A DNA stretch of 64,000 bases, taken from contig CATNEN010000002.1 of the NCBI GenBank assembly GCA_950097015.1, forward strand, positions 3,286,001 through 3,350,000. The letters are read 5' to 3'. The translations under genes and the position numbers were made by a program. The notes under the pieces are model-generated. The model was not told the DNA's origin. It did no database searches and saw nothing but the letters and a program-made list of their open reading frames with translations. Below are positions 1-61,197 of this stretch, one piece after another. How positions within the stretch are numbered: the first letter of the stretch is position 1; every line of letters begins with the position of its first letter. Source of the stretch: Macrostomum hystrix. Lineage: Eukaryota > Animalia > Platyhelminthes.

Positions 1-37
1 TTGTTTCTTGTGTCGCAGGTTCACATGTCTTATTGAA

Positions 38-215
38 CGGGCCACCGCCTGCCGCCAGCAGTTATTGTTAAAACCTGAAAAATGCCCTGAAAAATCGCCT
101 AACGCTCTTCCACAGATCCTACGAAGATGTTTGCGTTAATTCTGTTTGCGCAGAAAATTGATTTGCGCAATCTTTCAGGGGCCAGGTTGCTGCCCGGGCC
201 ACCGCCTGCCGCCAG
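38..215. repeat. 100-bp intronic tandem repeat, short version in copy A
   Basis: One full and one partial unit of gatcctacgaagatg...gggccaccgcctgccgcca; same unit at 22.7-23.3 kb and 50.6-51.3 kb. Confidence 0.75.
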
Positions 216-660
216 CAGCTGCGTTTAAAACCTGAAAAATGCGCCCAGCATCTTAGGAGGCCCTGTGAAGTGGGCGGCATGGTGCCGACTTGCAAAGATG
301 CAGAAATGCAAACGTGACCCCTGGTACGGGTTTAGTCTTTGTTATAAAAACATGGAAAACTGCTTTGACCTTAGATTTGCTTGCTGAACCCTTCCGCCGA
401 AATTCAGGTTTCTCTTGTCATTTGTCCCGTCCTATGCGAATCATTTGCTAAACCAGCTTTATCAGTTGTAAAACTGCTCCAAAGTGATCCAGGTGATGGA
501 CCCAAGCCTTGCATTTTCCGAGGTTCAATTGCAAATAGCTGCTTCTCTGACAAAATTTGTGAATTTCCCCTGTCCCTCGGCTCAGAACCTTCGTGCAACA
601 ATTGCGCTAACGTCAACTGTGACCTTAAAAGGGCACCCGTCTGCTGGTTTTTGGCCTTAC

Positions 661-3541
661 CTCACAGAAAGCGCCCTGGTAGGGATCGGGGCAAACAGTG
701 CAGCGCTCTACGGGAGCTGGTTCAGCACCCGAGCTGGTGTTGGTACTTGACTGGTACGTGATGTCCAGAATGCACACGTTTATCTGGCCCTGGAATTGGT
801 AGATCCGGAAGAAAATTCCACGCAGATCAGCGAGGGCGGTCATCACGTCCATTCTAGTGACGGCCGAACCGTCGATGGCACGCAGGTTCTGCTCGTCGAG
901 TGTCACGGAGAAGCGAGTCTCTGGGGCGCGGTTGGTGGTTCGGTCCCAATACACCAAGGTCTGGCCTCTCCAGCCCTGTTAGTTGGATGAACAATAATGC
1001 ATTTGAATGTAAATAACAGATGCCATTGTTGAGCAAAGCACTCTGATTTTCGACATTTCCTAAATATGACTGTCATTCTTCATCTCAAGCACGCTCGCTG
1101 TTACGATCGTCTTCCATTCTGCTAAGCAGTTTTTTCACTTTTCCCAACGGCCCCTGTCAATTTTAGCATAGACGCTGTCGCCGTACCTTGATGCCGAAGA
1201 TTGGGAACGCCGTATCGGCCGTCAGCGCTGTGTCCATGCGCACGTTGACTCGCACGGTGAAGCTCAATTTGCCGCCGTAGGCTGCCAGCTGAAAATGAAA
1301 GTTCACACGATTTCTTTTATTTTACATCACGAACTTGGATTCAGAGTGTCCCAGACTGTTGTCTAGCCGTACCCGCTTGCCAGACAAGCTCGTCAAGAAC
1401 ACGTAGGACTCGTCATCGTCTCGCAAAGCTGACGAGTCGTCTCCAGTTGGGGCCACGGCTATCTCCGCTCCGGACTGTACTGTGAGCTTGGCGCGTGAAG
1501 TAGCGTCCTCGTACACTCCGTACAGGCCCCAGCCCATCAAACGCACCGCGGATGCTTCCACTGGTACTCGCTTCTGCAGTCGTGTGTCAAATGAAACCAT
1601 GTACAGTTGATAAGCATGTCGAGACAAATTTATTAACCTATTCTAAACTGATGAGAGACTTTTCTGTACCTCTTCGAAGTAAAGGCCGGCATTTTCGCAA
1701 GCATTCGATCGGTCGGAGCAGAAGCAGGGCACGCATCCATCCGGGTGGTCCCGCCTGAGACTGTGGAAGCCCGGCTTGCACTTGTCACAGTTTTCACCTT
1801 TCACGTTCGCCTGAATTCGAAAGATGAAACAATTTCCAATTAGCTTTTTTCGTTGCACTTTATGCTCATGTGGCTCTGTACTTTTAGTATTTTCTTTAGG
1901 ATGAAACAAAATCTGCAATCAGCTGCTCACCTTGCAATTGCAGACGTTGTTCTGACAAATGCCACCGATGTTGCAGGTCTTGTTGCAGTCGATGCCAGTG
2001 GCGACTAAATTCAGTTATCAAATTGTTGCTCAAGCTTTTCTCATTGCTTTCTATCTGGCTGCGAAGAGCCAGCTAGTCTCTAATAATTATACAAAAAATG
2101 AAATGCCTGCTTGCTTGCTGCAATCGAGTAACTCCGGAAGGGCTTTACCGACTTTTATAACTCCTTGACTAAAATATGGCCATTCACTTATATAGAAAAT
2201 TGATTCTCTGATACTGGGGCACATTGGTTCTCTGCTGCTGGGGCACATTGGTTCTCTGATGCTGGGGCGCATTGGTTCTCTGCTGCTGGGGCACATTGGT
2301 TCCCTGATGCTGGGGCACCTCTGATGCTGGGGGAGAGTAGGGTTTTTCTGCTCAGGTTGCCAGCCAATATGTGATTATGCTTGGGGCAAACAGGTGGTGG
2401 CGTATCAGCTTTTTGAGAGGACAAGTGCGATTTGCATTAGAGAATTGTATAAATCCTGAAATCCTGAAGTTACCTATTGCTAGTAAAAATGATAATATAT
2501 ATGTTATTCATTTAAATTTATGAAACGTGCTACTGCATTAAAGGTCATTAAATATAAAATGCCGACGGTTTCAACTGGTCCATTGATAATAGCACCAATG
2601 AACTCGGAATTCGTAATTTTGTCAGGGCATCAAAGCTAGTTCTCCTTTACTCCGTCCCTCCCTCAAAGGGGGAATCTATTTGCGCGTTACTTGCGCGTTA
2701 CTTGTACAAGCCCTTGTGTGCAGGGCGTTAGATTAACAACTATTATCGTTTCTAGTGTATTTTCTATCGAAACGTACTAAAACTAATGCGTTGCTTATAC
2801 TTGCAACTGACTCACACATTGGTTTCTTGTCTTTCCACATTCATAATTTCGTGCCTACCTACTTCCTTTTAAATGACTAGCCGCTTATTTACCATTAGCT
2901 TGCAGTCATTATTTAAACACTTGAAGGTTAGATTAGGTTAGATTAGGTTAGGTTGGCTTAGGTTAGATTTTATCAGATTATCAAATAATGATTAAACGCT
3001 TTATAGTTATAGCTCGTAGACATCACATCTGAGATTTGTTATTGGATTAAAAAATTATGCACAAGAGATCCTATATAACTTGTGAAAAAAGCTCACGTGG
3101 GTCCTTAACAAGTGGTACAGGATCCGAGTATCTCCTTGTGCCAGACGGATCCACACCGGAACACCTGTACCAGTGATTCCCCCTACTTGGTCTGTGATAG
3201 TTGGAGCTCAGGGTAGAGGAAAAAGTTTTGTGCGTAATCGCCGGCGGCCCGATGGGATCATTGCGCTCATCGTTAAAGTGAAACTTGATGTCTCGGAGGC
3301 GCACATCATGAGTGCAGTTCACAAATTTGAACCCGGGGAACGGTGACGGTCCGACTGTCACGGCTGAAAATTCAAGACAGAAAAAGCTTGCCAGTAAAGT
3401 ATTTGGAATCTACTGTGAATAACAACAGAACGTACTAATCTGAATGGGGTCGTTGACGGCCAGATCCTGGGCGTTGGCGATCATTGGCGACAACAGAAGG
3501 CCAAGGAATAGGCAGGCCAGGACAACTGCTGGCTGGCCCAT
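661..3541 (-). CDS. Ig/laminin multidomain secreted protein, paralog A (5' part; continues off the left edge)
   Basis: Exons 3436-3541 (MGQPAVVLACLFLGLLLSP signal peptide), 3097-3363 (Ig-like), 1931-2004 and 1670-1810 (laminin-EGF, CNCK-ANVKGENCDKCKPG), 1373-1573, 1187-1288 (LAAYGGKL, laminin IV) and 661-975 (end of laminin IV, CTVCPDPYQGAFCE). All junctions are GT-AG with matching phases. Near-identical to B at an offset of 23126. Confidence 0.85.
2206..2330. repeat. 24-bp intronic minisatellite, copy A (about 5 units)
   Basis: Unit ctctg(a/c)tgctggggcacattggtt repeated. Confidence 0.9.
2926..2968. repeat. (ttagg/ttaga)n simple repeat
   Basis: ggttagattaggttagattaggttaggttggcttaggttag; also present in copies B (about 26155) and C (about 54196). 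Confidence 0.8.
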
Positions 3542-3656
3542 GGCTTTGCGCTGCTGGTTGAAAATAATTTCTAGTTAATGCCTAAAAGATCCTCAAAGAT
3601 TGAAGATAGAACTCCGTCGCCTAGATTTCTACTGCAAGTGTCCATATATTTCTAGC

Positions 3657-3745
3657 AACGGGTCTTATAGTGGACCCGTTCACACTGCTGAGGTGGAGAG
3701 CGAGGCGACAACCAATAGAGCGAGTGCTTCGCTGGTCGCTATTGG
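3657..3745 (-). promoter_or_regulatory. Putative core promoter of paralog A (inverted CCAAT pair plus TATA-like motif)
   Basis: ccaat at 3712 and attgg at 3741 face each other; minus-strand ctataa lies about 40-70 bp downstream and about 125 bp before the ATG. Conserved in all three copies. Function is inferred. Confidence 0.4.
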
Positions 3746-4287
3746 CTGGAGCTAAGGCATGCGCATCAGGAATATCTGGAGTCGAGTTCAACCCTCTTGT
3801 TGAGGGAGGCGCACTGGCCTGCGCCCGGTACAGTTTTAGTCCATTTGTAAAAGTGGATTCAAAACTAACCATCTGAAGTGTTTTGTAATGTCTGACCTAA
3901 TACAGCACTAAAACAAATTTATTACTGAATATACCAATATTGATAGGCTGCAGAGGGCTGAAACGAGGTAAAACGTTGAGGCGCGTACATATTGGTGTTG
4001 TAGTTAGACAACAGTAGCGGGCGGGCTGCCGTTAGTTTCAACCTCGTTTCAACACGCGTAGGCTAACTACAATGGTATTAATATATCAATATTGACAGGC
4101 TGCAGAGGGCTGAAACGAGGTAAAACATCGAGGCACGTAGCGCCGAGGCGTTTCACCTCGTTTGAGCCCGAGCAGCCTATCCATATTGGTGTTGTACGAG
4201 CGTAGTTAGCGGGCGTGAAACGCGTTTCACGGTCCGCTGAGACTTTCTATGGTAAAATCGCTCTGAGTTCTATGCCTTCAGTCGGTT

Positions 4288-5019: not shown

Positions 5020-5742
5020 AATCTGGACAAGAAAACTTCGCCCATATCGACGGTGTCCGTGCCTTTAAGCTTAGGCCATTGCAATTGAAGAATGTGCAAG
5101 GAAGCCTTGAGCCCCGTTGCGCAAAACATAATTGCGGAAACTGGGTGCCCTGGTTGTCCGTACACCGCTCTAAATATCTACATGGCAAAGATCGAAGAGG
5201 CTAAAAAGGCTGCCGGAATTGAAAACCAGGTTTTCTTCCTTCGGCCTCGTGTACGAGGTGTCAACAACTCTTGGTTCTTCGCTAATCAGCCAGTTGGACA
5301 TAACACGTTAGGCAATATGATCGCGTCGATATCGACAAATGCGAAGCTAAGCAAGAGATACACCGGTCACTGCATTCGTGCGACCCTGGTGACTGAGCTG
5401 AATGATGCGGGAGTGTCCATTGCTGACATTGGAAAGATCACTGAACACAAGTCCACTGAGGCTACTCATCGCTACATTCGCAAAACCGCAAAGCGTGATG
5501 CTGATATGGCAAGGCTATCTAACGTAATCAGCGATGTTAGTGCCAGTTCATCGAAAAATAGCGCTGAGACAACTTCACCTTCATTGGATATTGCACATTC
5601 TGGTCAATCGGCGAGTGATGGATCTAATGTGAGCACGGATAAAGTTGGTCTGGAGAGACGCGCAGGGCTGCTATTGGCATCTGGAATAAGCGGAACTTTC
5701 GACAATTACACCTTTCAGGTATTTCTTAGCAACGGTCGATGA
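5020..5742 (+). pseudogene. C-terminal catalytic half of tyrosine recombinase
   Basis: CPY..IYMAK, FFLRP, QPVGHNTL, YTGHCIRAT (H-x-x-R), EHKS..HRY (catalytic Tyr). An upstream KNVQG segment is in another frame. Confidence 0.8.
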
Positions 5743-7544: not shown

Positions 7545-7627
7545 TCCGCGAAGCCTTCTGAACAGGCGGTGTTAGCTGGTATTGGTGTTGTTGGCTAGTG
7601 GTGGTGGATTTACTAGAATAAACGTGA

Positions 7628-8184: not shown

Positions 8185-11100
8185 TCAGAGTGGACTATTA
8201 AGAATAACTCCGAATGACGCTGTCTCTGCGTCCCAGGTTCTCTTAAATTCCGCCTTGCCGAGAGAGTTTTCAGCGGAGCACACGTAGGTGCCATACGCGT
8301 TGTCGCGGCCGATGTTCTCTGCAGTTGTGAAGGTGTCAAGCGATGAAAATTTGGGAGTCAAAATGCAGTGTGTCACTTCAGCCAATACCTTCTGACTAGT
8401 TTTCCTTAGAATATATTCTGGCTTAGACGGTTCTATTTCTTCGCGGAAATTCCATGGACTGCCCATACTATTTTTAGCACACGGGAAACCCACTTTAAGT
8501 GATGCTTTTCAACCAATGGGAAAACAGGAATCATTTTCTCTATTCCAATGTCCCTATTTGTTAATGCGCATCAGATCATTCGGTGGAAAATGGTAAAATT
8601 ATATTTTAGAAAAATATGATACACCTTTTTCTTTTGATAATTTCAACAGCCTCACAAGCTATATCTTGGCTTCCCTCCATAGGAAGCCAAAATCAATATT
8701 AATCCCTCCATATTGATAAATATTTTATTAAGGCTATTAAGGCCTTATCCTCTTAAGTCCATGGACTGAGGGGGACGCCACACCACCCTCAATTACCCCA
8801 CCTAATGCTGGTACAATTAAAACAAATGGATGAAGCGAAGCAATTTAAAGATAAGTGTATTGCTTATCTTTATAAATTGTTCTCTCTTTAGAGTCTCTAT
8901 CCCTGGACTCTGATTTTATCAGGTTCTAAACCGGACTCTCTCGCTGGGGTCAGGAATCGAACTTCCGACCTTTAAGTCGAGAGCTTCACGCTCTAATCAC
9001 AAGGCTTCAACCACACGCGCTGATTGGTTGAACCAATCAATCTAGATAAAACGAGTAACAAGTTCACAAACCTATCTACCAGCTATGTTACTTCCTTATC
9101 GCTCCTTTCCGATTGAGCAAGCAAGTTGATGTCCTTTCCTTACCTTTTGGTAGTCTGAAATGGAAGGGGTGTTAGAATAGCCTTTAGAATCTGTTTGTGT
9201 ACTTCAATTCATTAAACCACAATGCTTCTAAATCTAAACACTCACTTGTAAACTAGCTGCGACCCGTATCTGCCGGAGTCATTTTGGTCGAAAAAGGTCT
9301 TCTCATACTGCCTGATCCACCTTGGGGTCTCCAGTTGAACATTGTCCGCGTCGCGCTTGGTAATATCCAGATCCGGGTACGGGTAGCCGGTAAAGAGGCA
9401 TTCAAAATAAATGTCGCCTTCGTCCGTCTTCGTGATGTAAAAAAAGCCGTAAGTCCCTTGCCTCAACTCGCCTTCGCCAGGTCGGGCTAAGGGGTCGAGG
9501 TTTAAAGTACGTTAGCCCGACTAACGCACTTAGGGATGTCAACTTAAGACTCCAGAATGGAGACCTATGGTCAATAATCGAACCAAATCAACTGAAATCA
9601 GCAGCTGGTCGATCCAGTTGACCCAGAGTATCCCCAGGGTACCCTGAAATAAAGCGAACCCTAATACTGAGAACGAAACCCATTTCCCTGACTCCTGAGC
9701 ACACAGTACACAGATGATGTACACAGACCCTGATTTCAGGAAAAGTACTATCTTACTGCACCTTTAAGCTGGCCCTAAAGCGTGCCAATTGTACAGCAAG
9801 ACCCTTAAACCTTCTCGCTGCGGCTGCGCCCCAAGTTAGTGTGGGCATGCCGCGAGTTCGAGCAGGAATCTTGGTGCTCTGAGAAACTGAGACCGCTCTG
9901 CCACTCACCCCCTCCTAACAAACAATGTCCAAGCTACTCGGTTGGAAAATGTGACAGGAACGGAATCTTCGACAACGCCTTGAAAGCGTCTCTCATAATG
10001 CAATCTTGAAGCTTACTACGCTATAACTGAACCTAATCCGAATTAGCTTTCACAGCTTTCAGCAGAATCATGTTGCGCGAAAAGTTCTTACTTTGCATGA
10101 AAGCCTTGATGGGCACCGACTGAATATACAGATCTTTAACGCCCGATACGTTGATGAATGACCTGACGGCCACGCACATGAAAATGCCCGAATTGCTCAC
10201 GGAGCCAGTCTGCAGCGTCAGGGTCGCCTTGCCGCCCTCCAAACGCTTTTTCATGCCGGAAACCTCGGTGGCAGTGCCGGCTTCCCTCTCATCGTAGAGA
10301 CACTTGAAGTTCTTGCACTTTTGTGGGTGTGCGTGTGATAGGATGCTTGCAAAAATATTCCAAATAGAACGGCTATTTACAGGGCTCTCCAGTTTAACCT
10401 ACCTTGACCCAGTCCAGGTAGCGATATGCGTCTGAAATTATATCCACTTCTGCGTCGTAGTTCTGCAGAGTGCAAGTCAGCTCAATCGGTTGTCCATCGC
10501 GGCGCAAATCGACGATGTCCGGATTTCGAATGATCAACGAAGAGTTCACGGTGTCCTTCATTGTGACGACGATGTTGGGCCTCTCGGGAATCGCTAGAGA
10601 AAACGATGGTGTGAGAACATTATCTTAGTGGAAGGCTGGTGGGACTTCTTCTAAACCGGCCGATCTCTTTCTGTACGGACTCACAGACTGGTTCTCTGAC
10701 TCACTGCTTTGGTCTCTTCACTCACAAAGATTTAGTAGGCCTGTGCTTAGAGATTCAGGCACTAATCTGGGGGTCGGGAGTTTGCCAAACCTCAGCCAAG
10801 AAAAATTAATCTGTATTCCCGATTCGCAGCCAACGGAGAGACAATTCAGCACATTTCGCTGACTTCTGAACATGCACAGGTACATGGATACTGTATTCTG
10901 GCACAAACTCACAGGTGATCGTATCTGCCTTGAAGTTTCTTCAGGCAGTGTACACTCTCAATGTACCTTGGGGTTCGGCTCTCAAGGGCATAAATGGCAT
11001 GACAAGCCCCGAAGCCTCGGAATCGGGCTCAGGGACATTGGTGAAGGAATGAAACTAAAACAAGTGTCGCCAATGTGTATCTCTAATTCTTACTGAACAC

Positions 11101-36260: not shown

Positions 36261-36261
36261 C

Positions 36262-37590
36262 TTAACTAGCATTTGAGTTTTCGTATGGTTCTTTTACCAT
36301 TGCTTTTAGGATTTCTTCAAGTTTTAGCACGTTTATTTCTTTTGCGGCATGCTTTACAGATTCATGCCAGATTTTTCGTTTCAAATCATTGTCGCTGATC
36401 GTCGAAACCAAGAGATTCAAGGCATTTAAACCAAATTCGCTTGATGCCTTTGAATTAAAATTCGTTAGAATGCGATCTTGAATTCTTTGGTCAGACACCA
36501 GATTAAAAAAGTAATTAAGGCATGCACCATTTTGTTCAAATGTCGCTCGGGTAGCATACTTCAGACAAAGTTCATCGCGGATCTTTTGATTTGAAATTTC
36601 CTGCACCATAAATTTTACTTTGTCCCAATTTCGTTCTGTCGCTGCTAATTCTGCAGCCTTTTTGCAGCAAGAATCTTTCTTTGCTGTGTCGGTAATGTTG
36701 CTAAGAAGGTAGGCTATTAATCTGAGTGGAGCAGTGGTGTTAGAAACAAGTTGAGAACAGAATTCATTTCTTTGCTCTACGTCGGTCATAGTTTGCAAAT
36801 ACATTGCTGCATTTTTTATTTTTTTATTTTCTGATACCACTCGTTCTTGGGCTTCGACTCTACGAGTTTCGGTCGAAATTAGAAGAGGTGCGTACTGTTC
36901 TGTACAAACCTTGAGTGCTCGAATATTTTCGTACTGAAAATCACAACGGCCTGCCGGCATCAGTGTTAGATTCGCATCCATGGCTGAGTTACAAACAGTG
37001 ATTTTATTCTCAGAGAAGCAGTTGTCGAGAGCGCTAGCTGAATCATTCTTGTCATAGCCGTCATGCTCGGGCGGCTTTGGTGTGTATATTATATCATCGT
37101 ATTCGTTTTCGCTGTTGACAGGCAGGGCGGAATCCGGAGAATCGGTAATTTCATCGTACTCAGAATCTCCATGCATTTCTGCACAATTATAGCTCGCTTC
37201 TCCGATATCCTCGCGCGTGAAAGGATGCGCTTGCCGAAGGCCTGGGACTAATAGTAAAGGCATGTGATCGCACACTTGATAATTCGATGTATTCGTACTC
37301 GACATTGTCACACCATTCACATTTAACGATAGGTCGCGAATCACAGGTATATTTCTATTGACCATCTCAAATGAAATTTCTGTTTCAGAATTTTTTATTG
37401 TGCTCTTTAAGTACTCTAGAACATTGGATCGACGGTTTGTTGCTGCAGAGTCAGCAGCAAGTCTATAGACCGTTATGCGTATTTTTCTGCTTCGTATGCG
37501 GCTAACTTTGCGCTGAAGTCTACTGACGTCTCCAGCCGCTGCTGCATCTTCGATTCTCTTTAAATCCTTAATAGTTAGTGTATTTCCCAT
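36262..37590 (-). CDS. Uncharacterised ORF of about 440 aa, probably the 5' exon of the ANK-Mab-21 gene
   Basis: Long open frame from MGNTLT with degenerate helical/ANK-like repeats; stops within a few nt of the ANK frame, on the same strand. Confidence 0.6.
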   Translation of the reverse strand: MGNTLTIKDLKRIEDAAAAGDVSRLQRKVSRIRSRKIRITVYRLAADSAATNRRSNVLEYLKSTIKNSETEISFEMVNRNIPVIRDLSLNVNGVTMSSTNTSNYQVCDHMPLLLVPGLRQAHPFTREDIGEASYNCAEMHGDSEYDEITDSPDSALPVNSENEYDDIIYTPKPPEHDGYDKNDSASALDNCFSENKITVCNSAMDANLTLMPAGRCDFQYENIRALKVCTEQYAPLLISTETRRVEAQERVVSENKKIKNAAMYLQTMTDVEQRNEFCSQLVSNTTAPLRLIAYLLSNITDTAKKDSCCKKAAELAATERNWDKVKFMVQEISNQKIRDELCLKYATRATFEQNGACLNYFFNLVSDQRIQDRILTNFNSKASSEFGLNALNLLVSTISDNDLKRKIWHESVKHAAKEINVLKLEEILKAMVKEPYENSNAS

Positions 37591-38039
37591 CGTTATGTTA
37601 GACTTTTTCAACAGCAAGAGGTGTTAAAGCACCTGTGCGCCTAGTGCGTAAGTATTCCTTGCCGTGGAAATACCGGATGAATTTAAATTGTTAAGGATCA
37701 GGATAAAACCCTCGTTTCAGTTAATTAAATTGTTTATTCTTATTGAAATATAGTTGTCGAGGTTTAATAAATTTGAAGGATTTGGCGCAACGGATGTATT
37801 ATAGCTCGTTTTTATAGTAGTTTATAGTAGAAAATTCCGGAATAATGTAATGCTCTAGAGAAACCTATTAGGGCAGCGACGCCACGGGGGCTGGCCAGTT
37901 TCTGAAAGTGTTTTCTTTGGATTCCAGGGGTCGGATTCCAGCCGCGGAGACGTTGTGGCCAAATAACATGATTTCGTTCACCCTGGAAACACATCGTTCG
38001 CTGAATTTTACTTTCAGTCCGGTACTGCCAGGCGTGTCA

Positions 38040-48600: not shown

Positions 48601-51600
48601 AAATTTCACCATATGCCATGCATTCATGCATTCAAATTAAACTGTCTAATTAGCACACTTACGTGGCTTAAGAATGATCGGCATTCTTCGACTAACAGTG
48701 ACATTGTTGACCATGTCGCTGACGTGGCATGTCCAATAGCCGGTGTCATTGTCATTCTTCATGTCGTGGACGACTGTGCCCGTAAAATTGGCGCCGTTGG
48801 CCTGCTGCTTGATGGCTTCGAAGCGCTCCGAAAGACGCCCAGTAGGGAACGGGAGCCGTGTCAACGTGGCCCTGAACTGGGCCGGTCGCGACGGCTGCAT
48901 TGTGGAGTGGACGGTTGTGAGTTATTGTCAAGTTTCTTAAGTTTTAATGTCATTTAGAGAAGAGCGACGAACCTCCTTGGCCACAACTGAGCACTTTAGA
49001 GTGGTGGTGTCGGGGTCCTTGGGATCGCTTCGCAGCACCACCCTCTTCACCGAGCTGCTTTGCACCGTCAGGTTTGAAAATGCCACTGCGGACCCGGATC
49101 GTCTGTTGAAGCCTTCGCATCTGTACCGACCACTGTCTGACGGGCTGGCGTCCTTGATCACAAGGCGGGTCGACTTCTCATCGCGCACCTGGTAGATTCG
49201 GGACGTATCTGCCAAACGACGTCCATCAGAGTCCTGCCACTCCAGCAGCCAGGCGGTGCCGTTGTAGCCGGGTTTTTGTCGCCTGACCAGGCAAGTCAGC
49301 ACCACTGTACGACCGGACGGCACATTCAGGTTCTCTGGCTCCACGGTTGGAACCACGTCTGTGAATGCATCGGCCACGGAGTTGACAGTTATGGTACACA
49401 ATATGTTGATCCCGGGATATTACACACAGTATAAGATCCTTAGATATGAACTGCTTTGAATCTGGTTCACTTTATACAGCTTCTAAAACTTTGGATTTAC
49501 ACTGGACATGTTAATTTTGTGAACCAGCTATTTATTTTCTTGTCCGAGAAGTAGCGTATTCATGAAGAGAAAAATTTGCAACAAAAATTGACAACTGTTT
49601 TTCTGCTATCAGTTTCTAGATCCAGACTAGCTAGATAAAACCTGCATCGATGCTGCAAATTCCCATCATAGCATGGTCTAGCCTTAGTCAGCAGTGGCTC
49701 TTATTTGACCAATTTTAATATGAGCCGATCAGCTCGGCTATAAACAACACCCATAAAGGCAAAACCAGTGCACTTGATATCGCTATTATATACTTAGCAC
49801 ATTGAACTCGGCCATTCCATTTGAATGGCAATAGTTAGGTTAAATGTAAATGGAATGGAAACAAAGCTATTCGTTAGCTTACACTCTTCACAATCGGGTC
49901 GCTGTCCTCTTGGTCGGCCCACAATCTTGTCTGCATAGCCTTCCTCGCAGCTGAAATCGTTGAACAAGGAGAGCAAGCAGTACATGTACCATGCATGAAT
50001 GAATGCTTGTTTCCTATGTAGAGCTTTCGCTTTTCGAATGTGAAATCTTATCTAACCACGACTCGGCAAGCGACTATTAGACTCTGCTGAGGTACTGAGT
50101 TTTTTACCTGATTTTCCTCCTAGACTCTTAAAAATATCGAACCATGTAATTTTAGTGCTATTTTATCTTCTGTCTGAATTGAACTGGAATTTGGTCTTAC
50201 GTGTCACAACCCGGAGAGTTCCTGTAGCCTTCTAGGCAGGGAACACACTTCCACCTGTTCACAGTTGAGTTGTAGTCCACAATCTTGTGGAAATCTCCGG
50301 TTGCCTTGCAGTCCTGACGATGAAATTGTTAAGTCTTGATGTAAAACATTTTTGAATTACGGTTTGCTGCCAAACCATTTGGTGATATCAGCTTTAATTT
50401 GAGTTTATCTTATTCCACTGTTTAGTTACATCGGTCTAGCTTGCAATCAACCTGCACTTCGCTCGTGACTACTTGATGCTAAAACAAATTCATGGTACTT
50501 CACAATTTCAGATGCGGAGATAAAAATTGCAAGAGCCAACTTGTTTCTTGTGTCGCAGGTTAACATGTCTTATTGAATGCTAAACAATATCTAGTTGCTA
50601 TCGAGGATCCGACGAAGATGTTTGGGTTAATTCTGTTTGCGCAGAAAATATATTTGCGCAATGTTTTAGCGGCCAGGTTGCTGCTCGGGCCACCGCCTGC
50701 CGCCAGATCCTACGAAGATGTTTGGGTTAATTTTGTTTGCGCAGAAAATCTATTTGCGCAATATTTCAGGGGCCAGCTTGCTGCCCGGGCCACCGCCTGC
50801 CGCAAGCAGCTGCTTTTAAAACCTGAAAAATGCGCCCAGCATCTAACATCTAACGCTCTTCTACAGATCCTACGAAGATGTTTAGGTTAATTTTGTTTGC
50901 GCAGAAAATCTATTTGCGCAATATTTCAGGGGCCAGGTTGCTGCCCGGGCCACCGCCTGCCGCCAGATCCTACGAAGATGTTTAGGTTAATTTTGTTTGC
51001 GCAGAAAATCTATTTGCACAATATTTCAGGGGCCAGGTTGCTGCTCGGGCCACCGCCTGCCGCCAGATCCTACGAAGATGTTTAGGTTAATTTTGTTTGC
51101 TCAGAAAATCTATTTGCGCAATATTTCAGGGGCCAGGTTGCTGCTCGGGCCACCGCCTGCCGCCAGATCCTACGAAGATGTTTAGGTTAATTTGGTTTGC
51201 GCAGAAAATCTATTTGCGCAATATTTCAGGGGCCAGGTTGCTGCCTGGGCCACCGCCTGCCGCCAGCAGCGCCCAGCATCTTAGGAGGCCCTGGGAAGGC
51301 GGCGGCATTGCTACAAGCGCTGGTAGTGATGCAGCAGCCCACGATCTCCATGAATGGAGTGGATGAAGGCAATGATGCCGACTTGCAAAGATGCAGAAAT
51401 GCAAACGTGACCCCTGGTACGGGTTTAGTCTTTGTTATAAAAACATGGAAAAACTGCTTTGACCCTAGATTTGCTTGCTGAACCCTTCCGCCGAAATTCT
51501 GGTTTCTCTTGTCATTTGTCCCGTCCTATGCGAATCATTTGCTAAACCAGCTTTATCAGTTGTAAAACTGCTCCAAAGTGATCCAGGTGCTGGACCCAAG

Positions 51601-54600
51601 CCTTGCATTTTCCGAGGTTCAATTGCAAATAGCTGCTTCTCTGACTAAATTTGTGAATTTCCCCTGTCCCTCGGCTCCGAAGCTCCGAAACCTCACAGAA
51701 AGCGCCCTGGTAGGGATCGGGGCAAACAGTGCAGCGCTCTACGGGAGCTGGTTCAGCACCCGAGCTGGTGTTGGTACTTGACTGGTACGTGATGTCCAGA
51801 ATGCGCACGTTCATCTGGCCCTGGAATTGGTAGATCCGGAAGAAAATTCCACGCAGATCAGCGAGGGCGGTCATCACGTCCATTCTAGTGACGGCCGAAC
51901 CGTCGATGGCACGCAGGTTCTGCTCGTCGAGTGTCACGGAGAAGCGAGTCTCTGGGGCGCGGTTGGTGGTTCGGTCCCAATGCACCAAGGTCTGGCCTCT
52001 CCAGCCCTGATATTTGGATGAATAATAATGCATTTGAATGTAAATAACAGATGCCATTGTAGAGCAAAGCACTCTAATTTTCGACATTTGCTAAATATGA
52101 ATGTCATTCTTCATCTCAAGCACGCTCGCTGTTACGATCGTCTTCCATTCTGCTCAGCAGTTTTTTCACTTTTCACAACGGCCCCTGTCAATTTTAGCAT
52201 AGACGCTGTCGCCGTACCTTGATGCCGAAGATTGGGAACGCCGTATCGGCCATCAGCGCTGTGTCCATGCGCACGTTGACTCGCACGGTGAAGCTCAATT
52301 TGCCGCCGTAGGCTGCCAGCTGAAAATGAAAGTTCACACGATTTCTTTTATTTTACATCACGAACTTGGATTCAGAGTGTCCCAGACTGTTGTCTAGCCG
52401 TACCCGCTTGCCAGACAAGCTCGTCAAGAACACGTAGGACTCGTCATCGTCTCGCAAAGCTGACGCGTCGTCTCCAGTTGGGGCCACGGCTATCTCCGCT
52501 CCGGACTGTACTGTGAGCTTGGCGCGCGAAGTAGCGTCCTCGTACACTCCGTACAGGCCCCAGCCCATCAAACGCACCGCGGATGCTTCCACTGGTACTC
52601 GCTTCTGCAGTCGTGTGTCAAATGAAACCATGTACAGTTGATAAGCATGTCGAGACAAATTTATTAACCTATTCTAAACTGATGAGAGACTTTTCTGTAC
52701 CTCTTCGAAGTAAAGGCCGGCATTTTCGCAAGCATTCGATCGGTCGGAGCAGAAGCAGGGCACGCATCCATCCGGGTGGTCCCGCCTGAGACTGTGGAAG
52801 CCCGGCTTGCACTTGTCACAGTTTTCACCTTCAACGTTCGCCTGAATTCGAAAGATGAAACAATTTCCAATTAGCTTTTTTCGTTGCACTTTATGCTCAT
52901 GTGGCTTCGTACTTTTCGTTTTTTCTTTAGGATGAAACAAAATCTGCAATTAGCTGCTCACCTTGCAATTGCAGACGTTGTTCTGACAAATGCCACCGAT
53001 GTTGCAGGTCTTGTTGCAGTCGATGCCAGTGGCGACTAAATTCAGTTATCAAATTGTTGCTCAAACTTTTCTCATTGGTTTCTATCTGGCTGCGAAGAGC
53101 CAGCTAGTCTTTAATAATTATACTAAAAATAAAATGCCTGCTTGCTTCCTGCAATCGAGTAACTCCGGAAGGGCTTTACCGACTTTTATAACTCCTTGAC
53201 TAAAATATGGCCATTCGCTTATATAAAAAATTGATTCTCTGATGCTGGGGCACATTGGTTCTCTGCTGCTGGGGTACATTGGTTCTCTGATGCTGGGGCA
53301 CATTGGTTCTCTGCTGCTGGGGTACATTGGTTCTCTGATGCTGGGGCACATTGGTTCTCTGCTGCTGGGGTACATTGGTTCTCTGATGCTGGGGCACATT
53401 GGTTCTCTGATGCTGGGGCACATTGGTTCTCTGCTGCTGGGGCACATTGGTTCTCTGATGCTGGGGCACATTGGTTCTCTGCTGCTGGGGTACATTGGTT
53501 CTCTGATGCTGGGGCACATTGGTTCTCTGCTGCTGGGGCACATTGGTTCCCTGATGCTGGGGCACATTTGTTCTCTGATGCTGGGGGAGAGTAGGGTTTT
53601 TCTGCTCAGGTTGCCAGCCAATATGTGATTATGCTTGGGGCAAACAGGTGGTGGCGTATCAGCTTTTTGAGAGGACAAGTGCGATTTGCATTAGAGAATT
53701 GTATAAATCCTGAAATCCTGAAGTTACCTATTGCTAGTAAAAATAATCAAATATATGTTATTCATTTAAATTTATGAAACGTGCTACTGCATTAAAGGTC
53801 ATTAAATATATAATGCCGAAGGTTTGAACTGGTCCATTGATAATAGCACCAATGAACTCGGAATTCGTAATTTTGTCAGGGCATCAAAGCTAGTTCTCCT
53901 TTACTCCGTCCCTCCCTCAAAGGGGGAATCTATTTGCGCGTTACTTGCGCGTTACTTGTACAAGCCCTTGTGTGCAGTGCATTAGATTAACAACTATTAT
54001 CGTTTCTAGTGTATTTTCTATCGAAACGGACGAGAAATAGCTCGTACTAAAGCTAATACACTGCATATACTAGCAACTGACTCACACATTGGTTTTTTGT
54101 CTTTCCACATTCATAATTTCGTGTCTTCCTACTTCCTTTTAAATGACTAGCCGCTTATTTACCATTAGCTTGCAGTCATTATTTAAACACTTGAAGGTTA
54201 GATTAGGTTAGATTAGGTTAGGTTTGCTTAGGTTAGATTTTATCAGATTATAAAATAATGATTAAACGCTTTCTAGTTATAGCTCGTAGACAGCACATCT
54301 GAGATTTGTTATTGGATTCAAAAAGTATGCACAAGAAATCCCATATAACTTGTGAAAAAAGCTCACGTGGGTCCTTAACAAGCGGTACAGGATCCGAGTA
54401 TCTCCTTGTGCCAGACGGATCCACACCGGAACACCTGTACCAGTGATTCCCCCTACTTGGTCTGTGATAGTTGGTGCTCAGGGTAGAGGAAAAAGTTTTG
54501 TGCGTAATCGCCGGCGGCCCGATGGGATCATTGCGCTCATCGTTAAAGTGAAACTTGATGTCTCGGAGGCGCACATCATGAGTGCAGTTCACGAATTGGA

Positions 54601-57600
54601 ACCCGGGAAACGGTGACGGTCCGACTGTCACGGCTGAAAATTCAAGACAGAAAAAGCTTGCCAGTAAAGTATTTGGAATCTACTGTGAATAACAACAGAA
54701 CGTACTAATCTGAATTCGCTGCTCAAATTGCAGCATCACATAGTCAAACTCATCGCCCAGACGGCACTCCAGTCGGTAGTTGTGAAAGCATGGATTGGCG
54801 CGAAATTTAATGGTGACCAGCTGGCTGGAGACGGAGTCCTTGATAGACGTCTCGAAGCCGCCGGTGTTTCGATTCACTGGAATGTCGAAAGATGGGCTGC
54901 CATCCGAAGGCTGAATGCGCCAAACAACGTCATTAAGCTCGCCTCCGATGGGAATTTCGCATTCCAGTTCGCTTACGGCCCCGGGTTTCGTCGACAGGTC
55001 GTAGGTCGACTTGCCGTAATCGTGAATCGTAGGAACTAAAATTTTGTTAATAAATCTTGCGTTTTTATGCCTTGCACACGAAAGTATTACGTTTTATGGA
55101 CTCTGGAGAATTAGGCTCGCACACTTACCAATGACCCGGATGTCCAGAAAGGCATACTTCACTATGCCTCCGACATTGCAACGATAGTAGCCCTTGTTCC
55201 TTACATCGCAGTTCTTAACCGAGAGCACTGATGAGCTCGGGTTTTCTTGAATCTCAACGTTGTCCAGTGTACTGATATTGCGGTACGAACCAGCGGAAGC
55301 GGTGTCATCACGGAATGACCATCTGGTACTGTCAGACGGGTCCACCTTGTGGCACTCGAAAGCAACCTTGCTCTTCGGTGTGACGAAAATCGGGACGCTG
55401 GCAACATCCACCGGCACGGGCCGCATTCCGTCTGAAAAGTTGTAACCGTGCATGAAACTGTAGTCAGTACTATGTATGCATGAAACTGTAGTCAGTACTA
55501 TGTATGCATGAAACTGTAGTCAGTACTATGTATGCATGAAACTGTAGTCAGTACTATGTATGCATGAAACTGTAGTCAGTACTATGTATGCATGAAACTG
55601 TAGTCAGTACTATGTATGCATGAAACTGTAGTCAGTACTATGTATGCATGAAACTGTAGTCAGTACTATGTATGCATGAAACTGTAGTCAGTACTATGTA
55701 TGCATGAAACTGTAGTCAGTACTATGTATGCATGAAACTGTAGTCAGTACTATGTATGCATGAAACTGTAGTCAGTACTATGTATGCATGAAACTGTAGT
55801 CAGTACTATGTATGCATGAAACTGTAGTCAGTACTATGTATGCATGAAACTGTAGTCAGTACTATGTATGCATGAAACTGTAGTCAGTACTATGTATGCA
55901 TGAAACTGTAGTCAGTACTATGTATGCATGAAACTGTAGTCAGTACTATGTATGCATGAAACTGTTGTCAGTACTATGTATGCATGAAACTGTAGTCAGT
56001 ACTATGTATGCATGAAACTGTAGTCAGTACTATGTATGCATGAAACTGTAGTCAGTACTATGTATGCATGAAACTGTAGTCAGTACTATGTATGTGAAAC
56101 TGTAGTCAGTACTATGTGTGCATGAAACTGTAGTCAGTACTATGTATGCATGAAACTGTAGTCAGTACTATGTATGCATGAAACTGTAGTCAGTACTATG
56201 TATGCATGAAACTGTAGTCAGTACTATGTATGCATGAAACTGTAGTCAGTACTATGTATGCATGAAACTGTAGTCAGTACTATGTATGCATGAAACTGTA
56301 GTCAGTACTATGTATGCATGAAACTGTAGTCAGTACTATGTATGCATGAAACTGTAGTCAGTACTATGTATGCATGAAACTGTAGTCAGTACTATGTATG
56401 CATGAAACTGTAGTCAGTACTATGTATGCATGAAACTGTAGTCAGTACTATGTATGCATGAATGCACTATAATGCACGAGCCATTATATTTGCGAGCCAT
56501 TATATTTGCGAGCCATTATATTTGCGAGCCATTATATTTGCGAGCCATTATATTTGCGAGCCATTATATTTGCGAGCCATTATATTTGCGAGCCATTATA
56601 TTTGCGAGCCATTATATTTGCGAGCCATTATATTTGCAGAGCCATTATATTTGCAGAGCCATTATATTTGCAGAGCCATTATATTTGCAGAGCCATTATA
56701 TTTGCGAGCCATTATATTTGCGAGCCATTATATTTGCGAGCCATTATATTTGCGAGCCATTATATTTGCGAGCCATTATATTTGCGAGCCATTATATTTG
56801 CGAGCCATTATATTTGCGAGCCATTATATTTGCAGAGCCATTATATTTGCGAGCCATTATATTTGCGAGCCATTATATTTGCAGAGCCATTATATTTGCA
56901 GAGCCATTATATTTGCAGAGCCATTATATTTGCAGAGCCATTATATTTGCAGAGCCATTATATTTGCAGAGCCATTATATTTGCAGAGCCATTATATTTG
57001 CACATCTGTGCAAATAGTGTCGACACCTCCTGGCATCGTGGTCAGCCTATCAGGCCGCGGATGACCTCGGTTGGCTCGGACGGCCGCGCCTCGGCTGCGG
57101 CAGCCAAGATCGGCACATCAGGGACGAGCAGAGGACAGCGCAGCGCACGCCGTCGCACTGAGCGGCGACGTGAGCGCAACCGGCGTGGGCGACTTCGCGG
57201 TGCTTCAAGACGCCAGTTGCCCCCGGTCTCTGCCGCTTCTGAATCGGATCCGCCGGGTGGCGCCGGGGACCGTGAGGCCCAACGTCATCGGGCCCTAGCC
57301 GTACCAGGTGGTCGCCTCAGGCTCGGCACGCTGAACTGCCGGACCCTGAAGGCCCCCTGGCGTCGCACTCTGCTCGTCCAGCTGGCCCACGACCTACAGC
57401 TGGACCTCATAATGCTGCAGGAGGTCTCTATTGTGGCGGAGCCAGGCCTTCAAAATGAGGACCTTGGAGCCGGATGGAGCCTCTTGTACACGTCGGCAGA
57501 CGGCCGCGGGCGTGGCGGCGTCGGCGTGCTGATCGGACCGCGCCTTCGGCAGAGCGTGCACTGCGCCCCACTCTCCCCGCGTCTGCTGCGGGTTGACCTG

Positions 57601-60600
57601 CGCCTGCGCGCTCGCTGCATTCGGCTCTTCTGCGCGTACGCCCCTACGGCTGCCCACCCGGATGAAGCTCTCGCCTTTTTCGAGTTTCTGGCCGGACAGC
57701 TGGAAGAGATGCCAAACCGCGACACGCTGGTGGTGCTCGGAGACCTAAACGCAGTTCCACGTAGGTCCGAACGATCGCCTTTCGTTACGGGACGCGAGAA
57801 CGCCAACACGGATGCGCTGGAGGACCTACTAGAACGGCTGGACCTGATGTCAATTAACACCCGTTTCCGCAAGCCACCGGCCCGCCTGGTCACCTTCGCG
57901 GGCTGCAAGAGGAGACGACGGAACGCGCGAGGACGGAATGCCACGAGGCGGCTGGCGCAACTCGATCATGTGCTGGTCCGCGCTCGCGAGCACCGCCGCG
58001 TCATCAACTGCGACACCATGGCTCCGCTGGCTCTCCGGTCTGACCACCGACTCCTGCTCTGCGACCTGCGGCTCAACGACCCGCTCTACCGACCCCCGAA
58101 GCAGCGGCCACGGCGCTACTATCGTGCCTTGTTGGACCCCCGCGTAAAGTACCAATTCGCGGGCGCCTTCGCTGGCGCGCTTGGAAACCAGCGCGAAGCG
58201 GAGTACGCCGACATCAGCACTGCCGTGAGAACTGCAGCTGAGAAGACGGTCCCGCTGATGCGACCGGCGGAGCGGACGCAGCCAGTCTGGCAGAGCGATC
58301 CAACGATCAGGCAGGCGCGGCTAAAGATCGAGCGACTCCGAAGATCCCGACGGCCCACTGGTGACGCCGAGGAGGCGCTCGCGCGTCTTCTGGACACGCG
58401 GCAGCAGGCCGCAGTCGACGACGCCATCCAGTCCATCACAGCAGCTGGCCCCGACGTTAGGAGCCGCGCAGTGTGGACGGCCGTTCGGACCCTTACGGGG
58501 CGCAAGAGGCGTGTGGCGCTAAATCTGGCCGGCGACACTCCGGAGGAGCGCAGGAATGAATTGCGCGACTTCTTCGCCGGCATTGTGAATGCGCCCTCGC
58601 CCCCGCTGCCAGCCAATTTCGCACTGCCGACGGACACGGCCCTGCCAGCTGAGGAGGATTTTCGCACCAGCCCAGTCACTGTGGAGGATGTTGTACGGTT
58701 CGCTCGGAGAACATCTGGCGGCAAGGCGCTCGGCCCCGACGAGGTTCCGGTCGAGGCGCTGCGGCTCCGCTGTGTGGCTTCCCAAGTCACAAGCGCCATG
58801 AACCGCGTGCTCGCCGGCGCCCCTGCGCCCACCGAGTGGACCGTAGCACACATCGTGCCGATCCCGAAGAAAGCCGGGACAACGCGGAAAGAAGATCACC
58901 GCGGGATCTCGCTTATGTCCTGCACCGCAAAGCTTTTCAACCGACTGCTTCTCGATCGCCTGCAGTCGGTGCTGGACCCGTACCTCCGTTACGAGCAGAA
59001 CGGGTTCCGGCCACAGCGCGGTACAGTAACCCAGATCCTCGCACTCCGCCGTGTCATCGAGGAGGCGCGCATCCGCCAGTCAACGCTGATCGTAGTGTTT
59101 GTCGACTTCCGCAAGGCGTTTGACTCGGTGTCGAGGGCCGCGCTTCCACTAGTCCTTCGTGCCTACCGGGTCCCAGAGCAGCTAGTCGCCGCTGTCATGT
59201 CGCTGTATCGCGACACGCGCGCTGCTGTTGTTACGGCGGACGGCCTGTCCGACCTGTTTGCCACCTCGTCAGGAGTGCTGCAGGGCGACACGCTGGCCCC
59301 GTTCCTCTTCGTGCTTCTCCTGGACTGGGTGCTTCGGACTGCGCTCCCCTCGGCTGAAGACGGCTTCCTGCTACGCAGACGCATCGGTCGCCGCCACGAT
59401 GAGAAGCGCCTCAGTGTGCTTGGCTACGCCGACGACCTCGCCCTCCTGTCCTCGACTGTCGAAGGTGCCCAGCGCCAGATTGACAGGTTGGCTGAGGTGG
59501 CATCAAGCGTCGGCCTAGTGATCAACACGCTTAAGACCGAGGTGCTGACCGTGCCGGCCGACATCCCAGCGGACCTGACGTGCCGCGGCGCAGACGGGCA
59601 GATCATCTCGCTCGCACGCTGCCAGCGCTTCACTTACCTCGGCGGTCTGGTGCCCAACGTGGAAGACGACATCCGGCGGCGCAGAGGACTCGCATGGGCG
59701 GCCTACCGTTCGATCCGGGCCGTCCTCCAGTCCACAGCGCTGCCTGACCGCCAGAGGGCTCGGCTGTGGCAGGCGGTGATCGAGACCGTCCTGCTGTACA
59801 ACGCCGAGTCGTGGACGCTGACGGCTACGCTGGAGCGGCAGCTGGACTCGGCGCACTCGGGGCTGCTCCGTGCGGCCTTTCAAGCTGACGAGAGCGTCGG
59901 GACGGAGGCTCTGTACGAGAGAGCTCAGCTGCAACGCCCGTCCACCATCCTGCGCCAGCGACGACTTCGACTAGCGGGCCACGTCATTCGGGCCGAAAGC
60001 TACTGCCGCCAGCCCGCCCAGGACGTCCTTCTGCTCACCCTGCAGGGCCCGTTCAGGCGCGGCCAGGCTCGGACCCGCCGCTACGTCGACTGCCTGCTGA
60101 GCGACGCCAGGGCGCCCGACACTGCCTCCGGCGCGGACCATGTTCGCGCGCTGGCTCTGCGGCGCATCATTTGACGCCGCCCCCCTAACGTTTGGGGCTT
60201 GCGTATTTTGTTGTTGTTGTTGTTGTTGTTGTTATGCATGAAACTGTAGTCAGTACTATGTATGCATGAAACTGTAGTCAGTACTATGTATGCATGAAAC
60301 TGTAGTCAGTACTATGTATGCATAAAACTGTTGTCAGTACTATGTATGCATGAAACTGTAGTCAGTACTATGTATGCATGAAACTGTAGTCAGTACTATG
60401 TATGCATGAAGGCATCGAATAAAAATTCAGAGTTAGAAACTATAAGCACATACGCTCGTAGACATTGGTCATTCGGCCGTCAATGACTCGCTGAACGGGA
60501 TCTTTCACAACTTTGAAAAATATGGCGGTATTCGATGGACTGGCTGAATCGGCGCACTTGTAGTACGTAAATCCAATGCCGTACTCTCTGCTCAGCTCTG

Positions 60601-61197
60601 AGTAGGGTAGCAACAGCTGCGGGCCCATCTGCCCGCTGATCTCGTGGAAACTAAGCGTCACATCGTTGTACTTGTACCACCTGTATGACCCACCGCTGCT
60701 CAGCGCGATCGTGCAGGTCAGAGAGGCGTCTCTATTCACCGAGACCGATGTCTCGATAATGTTACTCGTCGGTGTCACTTGAAATAGAAAGATTGCGATT
60801 GAAAATGAGTATTGAATGGGTTAGCAGAATTAATTAAATTAGCTGACTCACAGTCGGTGATGACGAACAATGAAGCCCTGTACAAATTCGGAGACACGGG
60901 CGGGTCGGTCATGCAGTAGTAGGAGCCGAACCTGCTCTTGTCGTTCTGGCTTACAATCAGCAGCGGGGTCACGCTGACAACAAGGCCGTCCTTCACCCAG
61001 GCCTCGAAGCGTCCCGGGGACGACACCGCGCAGTAAATATGGATCGGGAGCTCCTGAGCCTGGTAACGGTAGATATTCTGCACCTGGAACTCGACAAACA
61101 TTGGTTGGTTGACGGCCAGACCCTGGGCGTTGGCGCTCATTGGCGACAACAGCAGGCCAAGGAATAGGCAGGCCAGGACAACTGCTGGCTGGCCCAT
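42661..61197 (-). CDS. Ig/laminin multidomain secreted protein, paralog C (20 exons, about 1575 aa)
   Basis: Exons 60852-61197, 60454-60777, 55129-55431, 54706-55035, 54367-54633, 52962-53035, 52701-52841, 52404-52604, 52218-52319, 51692-52006, 50201-50313, 49883-49950, 48973-49358, 48663-48894, 47452-48174, 46572-46762, 46261-46486, 45420-45657, 45318-45328, 42661-42797. GT-AG and phase-consistent; lacks four B exons. Confidence 0.82.
43291..44701 (-). CDS. Mariner transposase, 351 aa if 43357-43711 is removed
   Basis: HTH N-terminus, WVPHDL, EDETW, DNARPH-34aa-D, YSPDF. The C-terminus VEKLYEYCQRVIDIGGHYVVD* lies at 43291-43356, beyond an insertion. Confidence 0.85.
43359..43709. mobile_element. 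351-bp solo-LTR-like insertion
   Basis: TGTC...GACA termini, 4-bp target duplication ACCT/AGGT (43355-43358 and 43710-43713), internal CCAAT and TATA-like motifs. Confidence 0.7.
44965..45195 (-). mobile_element. tRNA-derived SINE, counterpart of 8740-9015
   Basis: Same head (ggaatcgaacttccgacc on the plus strand) and body, with an internal deletion. Confidence 0.65.
45318..45328 (-). CDS. 11-nt micro-exon of paralog C
   Basis: Identical to 9144-9154, including splice sites. Confidence 0.75.
47324..47388 (-). pseudogene. Degenerate tRNA-like sequence, duplicate of 19477-19541
   Basis: A and B boxes; near-identical to the B copy. Confidence 0.5.
50606..51266. repeat. 100-bp tandem repeat, copy C (about 6 units)
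   Basis: Same unit as in B. Confidence 0.9.
53236..53585. repeat. 24-bp minisatellite, copy C (about 14-15 units)
   Basis: Same unit as in A and B. Confidence 0.92.
55450..56462. repeat. 28-bp satellite, copy C, left part (about 36 units)
   Basis: catgaaactgtagtcagtactatgtatg, nearly invariant. Confidence 0.97.
56477..57002. repeat. 16/17-bp minisatellite gagccattatatttgc(a), about 32 units
   Basis: Directly 5' of the RTE ORF; absent from copy B. Confidence 0.95.
57061..60174 (+). CDS. Intact RTE polyprotein (APE endonuclease plus reverse transcriptase), 1037 aa from the first ATG after the repeat
   Basis: GTLNCRTL, MLQEV, AYAPT, LGDLNA, LDHVLV, SDHRLL; GPDEVP, RGISLMS, EQNGFR, FVDFRKAFDSV, GVLQGDTLAPFLF, YADDLAL, FTYLG; no stops or frameshifts. 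Confidence 0.95.
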   Translation: MTSVGSDGRASAAAAKIGTSGTSRGQRSARRRTERRRERNRRGRLRGASRRQLPPVSAASESDPPGGAGDREAQRHRALAVPGGRLRLGTLNCRTLKAPWRRTLLVQLAHDLQLDLIMLQEVSIVAEPGLQNEDLGAGWSLLYTSADGRGRGGVGVLIGPRLRQSVHCAPLSPRLLRVDLRLRARCIRLFCAYAPTAAHPDEALAFFEFLAGQLEEMPNRDTLVVLGDLNAVPRRSERSPFVTGRENANTDALEDLLERLDLMSINTRFRKPPARLVTFAGCKRRRRNARGRNATRRLAQLDHVLVRAREHRRVINCDTMAPLALRSDHRLLLCDLRLNDPLYRPPKQRPRRYYRALLDPRVKYQFAGAFAGALGNQREAEYADISTAVRTAAEKTVPLMRPAERTQPVWQSDPTIRQARLKIERLRRSRRPTGDAEEALARLLDTRQQAAVDDAIQSITAAGPDVRSRAVWTAVRTLTGRKRRVALNLAGDTPEERRNELRDFFAGIVNAPSPPLPANFALPTDTALPAEEDFRTSPVTVEDVVRFARRTSGGKALGPDEVPVEALRLRCVASQVTSAMNRVLAGAPAPTEWTVAHIVPIPKKAGTTRKEDHRGISLMSCTAKLFNRLLLDRLQSVLDPYLRYEQNGFRPQRGTVTQILALRRVIEEARIRQSTLIVVFVDFRKAFDSVSRAALPLVLRAYRVPEQLVAAVMSLYRDTRAAVVTADGLSDLFATSSGVLQGDTLAPFLFVLLLDWVLRTALPSAEDGFLLRRRIGRRHDEKRLSVLGYADDLALLSSTVEGAQRQIDRLAEVASSVGLVINTLKTEVLTVPADIPADLTCRGADGQIISLARCQRFTYLGGLVPNVEDDIRRRRGLAWAAYRSIRAVLQSTALPDRQRARLWQAVIETVLLYNAESWTLTATLERQLDSAHSGLLRAAFQADESVGTEALYERAQLQRPSTILRQRRLRLAGHVIRAESYCRQPAQDVLLLTLQGPFRRGQARTRRYVDCLLSDARAPDTASGADHVRALALRRII
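60234..60410. repeat. 28-bp satellite, copy C, right part (about 6 units)
   Basis: Same unit, after the LINE tail. Confidence 0.95.

Follow-up and report, generated by a model that had tools for sequence, protein, structure and literature searches.

Perlecan (HSPG2; Trol in Drosophila, UNC-52 in C. elegans) is usually encoded by one conserved basement-membrane gene whose variants are made by splicing. UNC-52, for instance, occurs in in-frame variants produced by skipping of exons coding for immunoglobulin (Ig) domains and in forms without the laminin-G end, and vertebrate perlecan carries three laminin-B (LamB) domains. Germline-encoded variable Ig families include snail FREPs, amphioxus VCBPs and insect Dscam. 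Here, we analyze a tandem array of genes of the flatworm Macrostomum hystrix located in a stretch of 64,000 nucleotides (positions 3,286,001 to 3,350,000 of contig CATNEN010000002.1, assembly GCA_950097015.1), which is referred to below as the window. The three copies in the window, A, B and C, are very probably members of a Macrostomum-specific, perlecan-derived and tandemly expanded family of secreted proteins, with domains lost copy by copy.

Like perlecan, the family encodes predicted secreted proteins in which LDLa and then Ig domains (in copy D, to the right of the window) are followed by laminin-EGF (LE), LamB, again LE and a run of Ig domains. Unlike perlecan, it has a single LamB and five extra N-terminal Ig domains, and neither a SEA/glycosaminoglycan (GAG)-attachment region nor a laminin-G/EGF end was found. 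Moreover, there are seven or more intact genes rather than one, domain loss is genomically fixed for each copy, and the LDLa block has been lost in B and C. The hypothetical proteins Mlig028090 (g1, g4 and g5) and Mlig024543 (g1 and g2) of M. lignano belong to the same family: their LamB exon is 81% identical, and their exons are colinear along the whole gene. The length variants of M. lignano are different: one form joins Ig1 straight to LE, and its last ~254 aa are present as a threefold repeat. Public models of these genes are partly truncated and are unnamed or automatically named. The family may be likened to FREPs, VCBPs and Dscam in that secreted Ig proteins are encoded by multiple copies or multiple exons and contain hypervariable Ig parts. 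It differs from them in lacking a fibrinogen or chitin-binding domain, in showing no sign of somatic or splicing diversification and in having only two or three types of variable exon.

The M. hystrix assembly (220,453,370 bases in 42 contigs; PMC10468722, Table 1) was made from the inbred line SR1, for which a predicted inbreeding coefficient F of ~0.998, low duplication and low k-mer multiplicity are given (Wiberg et al. 2023, PMC10468722). Self-comparison of the window revealed a same-strand repeat unit of ~23-28 kb with 96-98% identity: region 276-3929 pairs with 23400-28839 and 51368-61583, 19366-31235 pairs with 47213-64000, and 8949-11037 pairs with 45123-47206. The coding signal is on the minus strand only. 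Since splice acceptors of M. hystrix are not pyrimidine-rich, generic splice-site scoring was unusable, and gene models were guided by M. lignano proteins and by comparison between copies. Copy B was modeled from open reading frames (ORFs) with M. lignano proteins as a guide and splice sites read off the sequence, and its exons were mapped onto the neighborhood and onto two clusters of the same contig (2.45-2.51 and 2.62-2.68 Mb). Eight loci, A to H, were modeled on this contig; loci outside the stretches that were read are known as search matches only. Pfam and sequence searches were run exon by exon, and joined proteins were used for length, frame, alignment and the ratio of nonsynonymous to synonymous substitution rates (dN/dS).

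As the original prediction had it, the window carries a tandem array of same-strand paralogs, and both self-comparison and exon models agree on this. The copies are also, as proposed, separate genes for secreted proteins, and each has a conserved stop as well as a start codon and a signal peptide of its own; these features, together with the conserved upstream region of each copy, led to rejection of a single giant gene with the copies as its exon sets. A count along the contig gave at least 9-11 family loci, not three. They form several clusters up to 0.8 Mb apart, and search matches place further family pieces at ~2.516, 2.524-2.548 and 3.613-3.615 Mb; some of these pieces contain stop codons, and some are in opposite orientation.

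The model of copy B contains 5790 nt without an internal stop codon and with GT-AG at every intron, and encodes a signal peptide, Ig1-Ig5, LE, LamB, LE and then about nine Ig-like domains. Its expected length of about 1930 aa was exact and makes it the longest copy inside the window, but D, beyond the window, is longer (2282 aa). Exons E1-E5 code for one Ig-like domain each, and the introns there are all in phase 1; Ig support from Pfam is weak for these exons, which are kept in M. lignano. The E6a-E11 core is present in all copies from A to H and is the best conserved part at the protein level. The 11-nt micro-exon E21b has strong splice sites and occupies the same position in each of the seven full copies, where it bridges E21 (phase 2) to E22 (phase 1). 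The last Ig domain is readable in frame only when this exon, easily missed by gene finders, is included; its residues correspond to an "LPT" insert in M. lignano. A direct phase-2 join of E21 to E22 was rejected, being impossible in C and D, where the only usable acceptors are in phase 0 or 1.

Copy C has the layout of B without E15-E18. The lost exons amount to 155 + 154 + 529 + 227 = 1065 nt, or 355 aa, and go from phase 1 to phase 1, so that the predicted in-frame absence of a 355-aa internal block was confirmed to the nucleotide. In B coordinates, the break lies 32 nt ahead of E15 and 57 nt past E18. Copy D has three additional exons, X1-X3, which encode Ig + LDLa, LDLa and LDLa + Ig, respectively, and are all phase 1-1. 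Frames are open and splice sites are all GT-AG in B to H; thus, there are seven intact copies of 1186-2282 aa with six layouts.

An HMMER search with the LamB exon among 1.8 billion representative proteins retrieved one close cluster, the M. lignano family. The remaining matches were distant (29-34% identity), and every named one, whether from insects, molluscs or vertebrates, was a basement membrane-specific heparan sulfate proteoglycan core protein. Pfam placed laminin-EGF on E6b and laminin-B on E9; Ig was clear on E12 and over part of E14, and Ig_3, I-set and V-set were the models matched by these two exons and by the M. lignano proteins. LDLa was likewise detected by Pfam. One LamB with LE on both sides is present in copies A-H. 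In D, matches to the LDLa region of Anopheles perlecan (residues 1119-1240) lie in order along X2-X3 and are followed by matches in the LE and LamB exons. The three LDLa with Ig, which correspond to perlecan domain II, were found in D and on an M. lignano contig; B and C are without them, and none was seen in A. On that contig, which carries PAA90335.1 (NIVC01000113.1, 4649-8430), E1-E5, the LDLa block and the later exons are colinear with D. Because of this colinearity, the layout of D is, as far as the sequences of the two species go, ancestral and older than the M. hystrix/M. lignano split, and those of B, C and the others would be derived from it by loss. The public PAA90335.1 model begins too late, with ~3.8 kb of upstream exons (five Ig and the LDLa block) left out on the same contig.

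Other parts of perlecan were looked for as well. A SEA domain with a GAG-attachment triplet (domain I) was not found by Pfam on B E1-E5 and the M. lignano proteins, which gave Ig-type matches only, and DSG/SGD motifs are merely scattered. As for a laminin-G end, copies B-H stop at a conserved codon after E22, an Anopheles perlecan query had no match downstream of the last exon of D (window-equivalent 61000-74377), and Laminin_G_2 had no match on the M. hystrix contig carrying the family. Exon-wise scans of the M. hystrix genome, which give lower bounds and may miss a canonical perlecan, detected no locus with both LamB and laminin G (LamG). A search for a membrane anchor returned the N-terminal signal peptide as the sole hydrophobic stretch above the usual threshold. 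Given the LDLa + Ig block of D, the named LamB relatives that are all perlecans and the ancestral D layout, the family is predicted to be derived from perlecan (domains II-IV), without domains I and V and with one LamB. Hence, of the absence of LDLa, laminin G and transmembrane segment in the original prediction, the last two stood, but the first holds for B and C and fails for D; for the three reasons just given, its verdict that the genes are not perlecan was too strong.

One can go further and suppose that D is the perlecan orthologue of the genus minus its laminin-G end, the other copies being its young duplicates and the whole family being nested within perlecan. This is a possibility to be taken seriously, though it falls short of probable. 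D indeed has its domains in perlecan order (LDLa + Ig, LE-LamB-LE, Ig run) and is the outlier in distances of the core region, all named nearest matches are perlecans, and no other locus with LamB and LamG came up in the scans. However, there is one LamB against the three of vertebrate perlecan, the five extra N-terminal Ig domains and the missing SEA and laminin-G have to be accounted for, LamB identity to perlecan is only 29-34%, and the scans, being lower bounds, may have missed a canonical perlecan.

We next consider how the copies differ in sequence. The ratio of nonsynonymous to synonymous differences per site (pN/pS) between copies is 0.25-0.35 in the LE-LamB core, which appears to be under purifying selection, and ~1 in the C-terminal Ig run. 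Between sequence types, it reaches ~2.5 in E21 (p = 0.019, uncorrected) and 2.6 in E5 (p = 0.015, uncorrected); for other exons, it is at or below 1 or not significant. Between B and C, E21 differs at 40 of 236 positions (16.9%), while the flanking introns differ at 5 of 247 and 6 of 250 (2.0-2.4%; p = 2e-12), and the changes form two patches around a conserved center. Two E21 sequence types are shuffled among the copies. Distance matrices calculated segment by segment conflict with each other: B is nearest to C through E14, while E21, E22 and the 3' flank of B (8188-9486) group with F, G and H and are 17-32% away from C and D (in C, 42664-45657). B is a mosaic of two copy types, with the disagreement between segments bearing the mark of exchange between copies, and the history of the family is best described as probable birth-and-death evolution with gene conversion. 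The view that this is a multi-copy family with whole-domain length variants was upheld, and at least one Ig exon (E21) is hypervariable.

It may be asked whether selection maintains such diversity because the secreted proteins serve as a repertoire for recognition (immune, self/non-self or reproductive), in the manner of other germline-encoded variable Ig families. This would account for an E21 whose divergence is 7-8 times that of its introns, with two patches and pN/pS of ~2.5, for the pN/pS of 2.6 in E5, for the occurrence of the same E21 types in distant copies although the flanks are homogenized, and for the high gene turnover. Yet E21 comes in no more than two or three types, the p values are modest and lack correction, the domains are those of a matrix protein, and part of the signal could also be produced by relaxed constraint in combination with gene-conversion tracts, so we regard the proposal as doubtful. 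Decidedly doubtful is its fuller form, in which secreted binding proteins derived from perlecan make up a germline repertoire and selection keeps a few highly divergent versions of certain Ig exons (E21 and E5) and different domain numbers in spite of homogenizing exchange.

The reading frames were analyzed in the D model, where 15 of the 26 introns are in phase 1 and the N-terminal Ig and LDLa exons are all symmetric. A random deletion from intron to intron would stay in frame with a probability of 0.42, and a single in-frame loss therefore says little. There are, however, five large variants (mid-E1 to the end of E4; X1-X3; E5; E15-E18; E17-E18), all in frame, for which the chance is roughly 0.01 at 0.42 each. 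Nine exon length differences among copies are all multiples of 3 (with values of -3, +3, +30, +21 and -9), and the coding sequences of the seven copies, 3.6-6.8 kb long, are free of stop codons and frameshifts and have kept all their splice sites. Because of these three observations, the reading frames clearly appear to be under selection. The original prediction had read frame-keeping as a sign of selection for length variants; the frames are indeed kept, but in part this is built into the genes, at 42%, by their symmetric exons.

Copy A, by comparison, is broken. In its 106-nt exon 1, the signal peptide is joined directly to the final ~12 nt of E4, and the E4 donor is used in phase 1; the part of E1 past the signal peptide through E4 is gone from A and from E-H alike. 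A runs on to the left of the window (E10, E11), where E12 has lost its acceptor and its first 66 nt through a 357-bp deletion, and breaks off inside E13, with small inverted scraps after it. At most ~462 aa of family sequence can be coded by A, which we take to be a truncated or dead 5' fragment and not an intact length variant. The predicted loss of Ig1-Ig4 from A is thus real, but A is not intact. Nor can the deletions in A and C be counted as two independent events affecting intact genes. Since the short exon 1 is also found in E, F, G and H, located 650-800 kb away, its deletion is an old variant common to five copies and not private to A.

With a broken A and stop codons in other fragments, one could suppose that the array is decaying, with one working gene and the rest dying as neutral duplicates whose in-frame deletions are due to luck and symmetric exons. 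The pN/pS of ~1 over the C-terminal Ig run and the 42% of intron-pair deletions that are in frame by chance agree with this. Neutral decay is nevertheless quite improbable in the face of seven coding sequences of this length without a stop, frameshift or lost splice site, of small exon indels that are all multiples of 3 and of the pN/pS of 0.25-0.35 in the LE-LamB core. Finally, an assembly artefact is unlikely: B and C are 96-98% identical over ~20 kb, a level that can confuse assemblers, but that a single real gene was falsely duplicated in tandem by the assembler, or is represented by uncollapsed haplotypes, is hardly credible given the properties of SR1 (F ~0.998, low duplication and low k-mer multiplicity; PMC10468722), the private LINE, mariner and minisatellite insertions of the copies, the differing exon sets (355-aa block, LDLa block), the 17-32% divergence of the 3' end, the spread of nine or more loci over several clusters as far as 0.8 Mb from each other and the several genes of the family in M. 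lignano.

We therefore return to the Macrostomum-specific, perlecan-derived family with copy-by-copy domain loss. Its ancestor would have had the layout of D: a signal peptide, five Ig, Ig-LDLa-LDLa-LDLa-Ig, LE-LamB-LE and an Ig run, without laminin-G. This gene would have multiplied along one M. hystrix contig by tandem and dispersed duplication, and break-repair or short-homology deletions, together with exchange between copies, may have taken out whole domains without breaking the frame, since most domains are on exons bounded by phase-1 introns. The outcome would be seven intact genes in six layouts alongside dead fragments, of which A is one.

Several points weigh against this reading. 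Pfam gave weak matches or nothing on several Ig-like exons. These exons have Cys-Trp-Cys hallmarks, with 11 (B) to 15 (D) hallmark places per copy, and are conserved as open exons in M. lignano with 41-89% protein identity. A single-sequence AlphaFold model of E17 was poor (predicted local distance difference test score, pLDDT, of 54), its Foldseek matches were mostly Ig and not significant, and a PDB sequence search with E17 returned nothing meaningful. A word-index protein search with E14 had no match in its length band, which is uninformative on longer relatives, and no mention of Mlig028090 or Mlig024543 was found in the literature searched. The dN/dS tests are pairwise, few and uncorrected, and are complicated by gene conversion. 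From domain content alone, we infer that the proteins may be extracellular matrix or adhesion molecules to which variable Ig parts give different partners.

Features of the M. hystrix perlecan-like array and related copies (window coordinates)
Feature	Position	Strand	Description
Copy A, in-window part	661-3541	-	exon 1 3541-3436, E5 3363-3097, E6a 2004-1931, E6b 1810-1670, E7 1573-1373, E8 1288-1187, E9 975-661
Copy B	8185-28453	-	24 exons, 1930 aa, coding 28453 to 8188, stop codon 8187-8185
B exons E1-E5	26326-28453	-	28453-28108, 28032-27709, 27390-27088, 26994-26665, 26592-26326
B exons E6a-E11	22037-25130	-	laminin-EGF, laminin-B (domain IV), laminin-EGF; Pfam EGF_laminin, Laminin_B
B exons E15-E18	11094-19334	-	19334-19180, 12635-12482, 12316-11788, 11320-11094; 355-aa block
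LINE retrotransposon	13152-19109	+	in B intron 15; D without LINE at the same place
B exon E21	9246-9486	-	first part of last Ig domain; hypervariable
Micro-exon E21b	B 9144-9154; C 45318-45328	-	11 nt, strong splice sites
Copy C	42661-61197	-	20 exons, 1575 aa, coding 61197 to 42664; B layout minus E15-E18
C deletion junction	47206-47213	-	intron 14 joined to intron 18, ~5 nt filler
C exon E21	45420-45657	-	second sequence type
Intron 2 insertion in C	55449-60233	+	expanded 28-bp minisatellite and LINE ORF; no exon lost
Copy D	window-equivalent 74377-92627, right of window	-	B plus exons X1-X3, 2282 aa
Copy E			short exon 1, without E5; 1440 aa
Copy F			short exon 1, divergent E5, without E17-E18; 1283 aa
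Copy G			short exon 1, without E5, without E17-E18; 1186 aa
Copy H			exon content as F; 1282 aa

The introns of the array contain several other elements. The ORF of the long interspersed nuclear element (LINE) in intron 2 of C (56506-60171) is intact and encodes 1222 aa with endonuclease and reverse transcriptase; its G+C content is 65%, compared with ~45% around it. Only a short version of the 28-bp minisatellite within which this ORF is located is present in B (27408-27665). The last intron of C houses a mariner-type DDE ORF (43625-44749, minus strand). Another minisatellite, with a 24-bp unit and variable copy number, is located in the E5-E6a intron (25228-25665, 53121-53690 and 2090-2436), at the exact place of the LDLa block of D; it is intronic though open in frame. 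Between A and B, there is a tyrosine-recombinase (Crypton-like) ORF (5089-5739, plus strand), and between B and C, at 31335-37623 on the minus strand, there are ankyrin repeats and a Mab-21/cGAS-like ORF containing a 33-bp tandem repeat (31406-33203).

Insemination in M. hystrix takes place through the skin, and a reproductive role of the family is conceivable. Should the fuller form of the recognition proposal be true, a recognition system (for pathogens, self/non-self or sperm/partner) would have been built from a basement-membrane gene. The analysis also corrects public gene models of M. lignano. More generally, a perlecan-type gene would here have turned into a family with a genomically fixed domain number for each copy, with adjacent live and dead copies, with sequence exchange between copies and with one exon that varies far more than its introns. 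Such a family may serve as a natural case for studying domain gain and loss in modular matrix genes, exon phase as a safeguard and the recruitment of a matrix protein for fast-evolving recognition.

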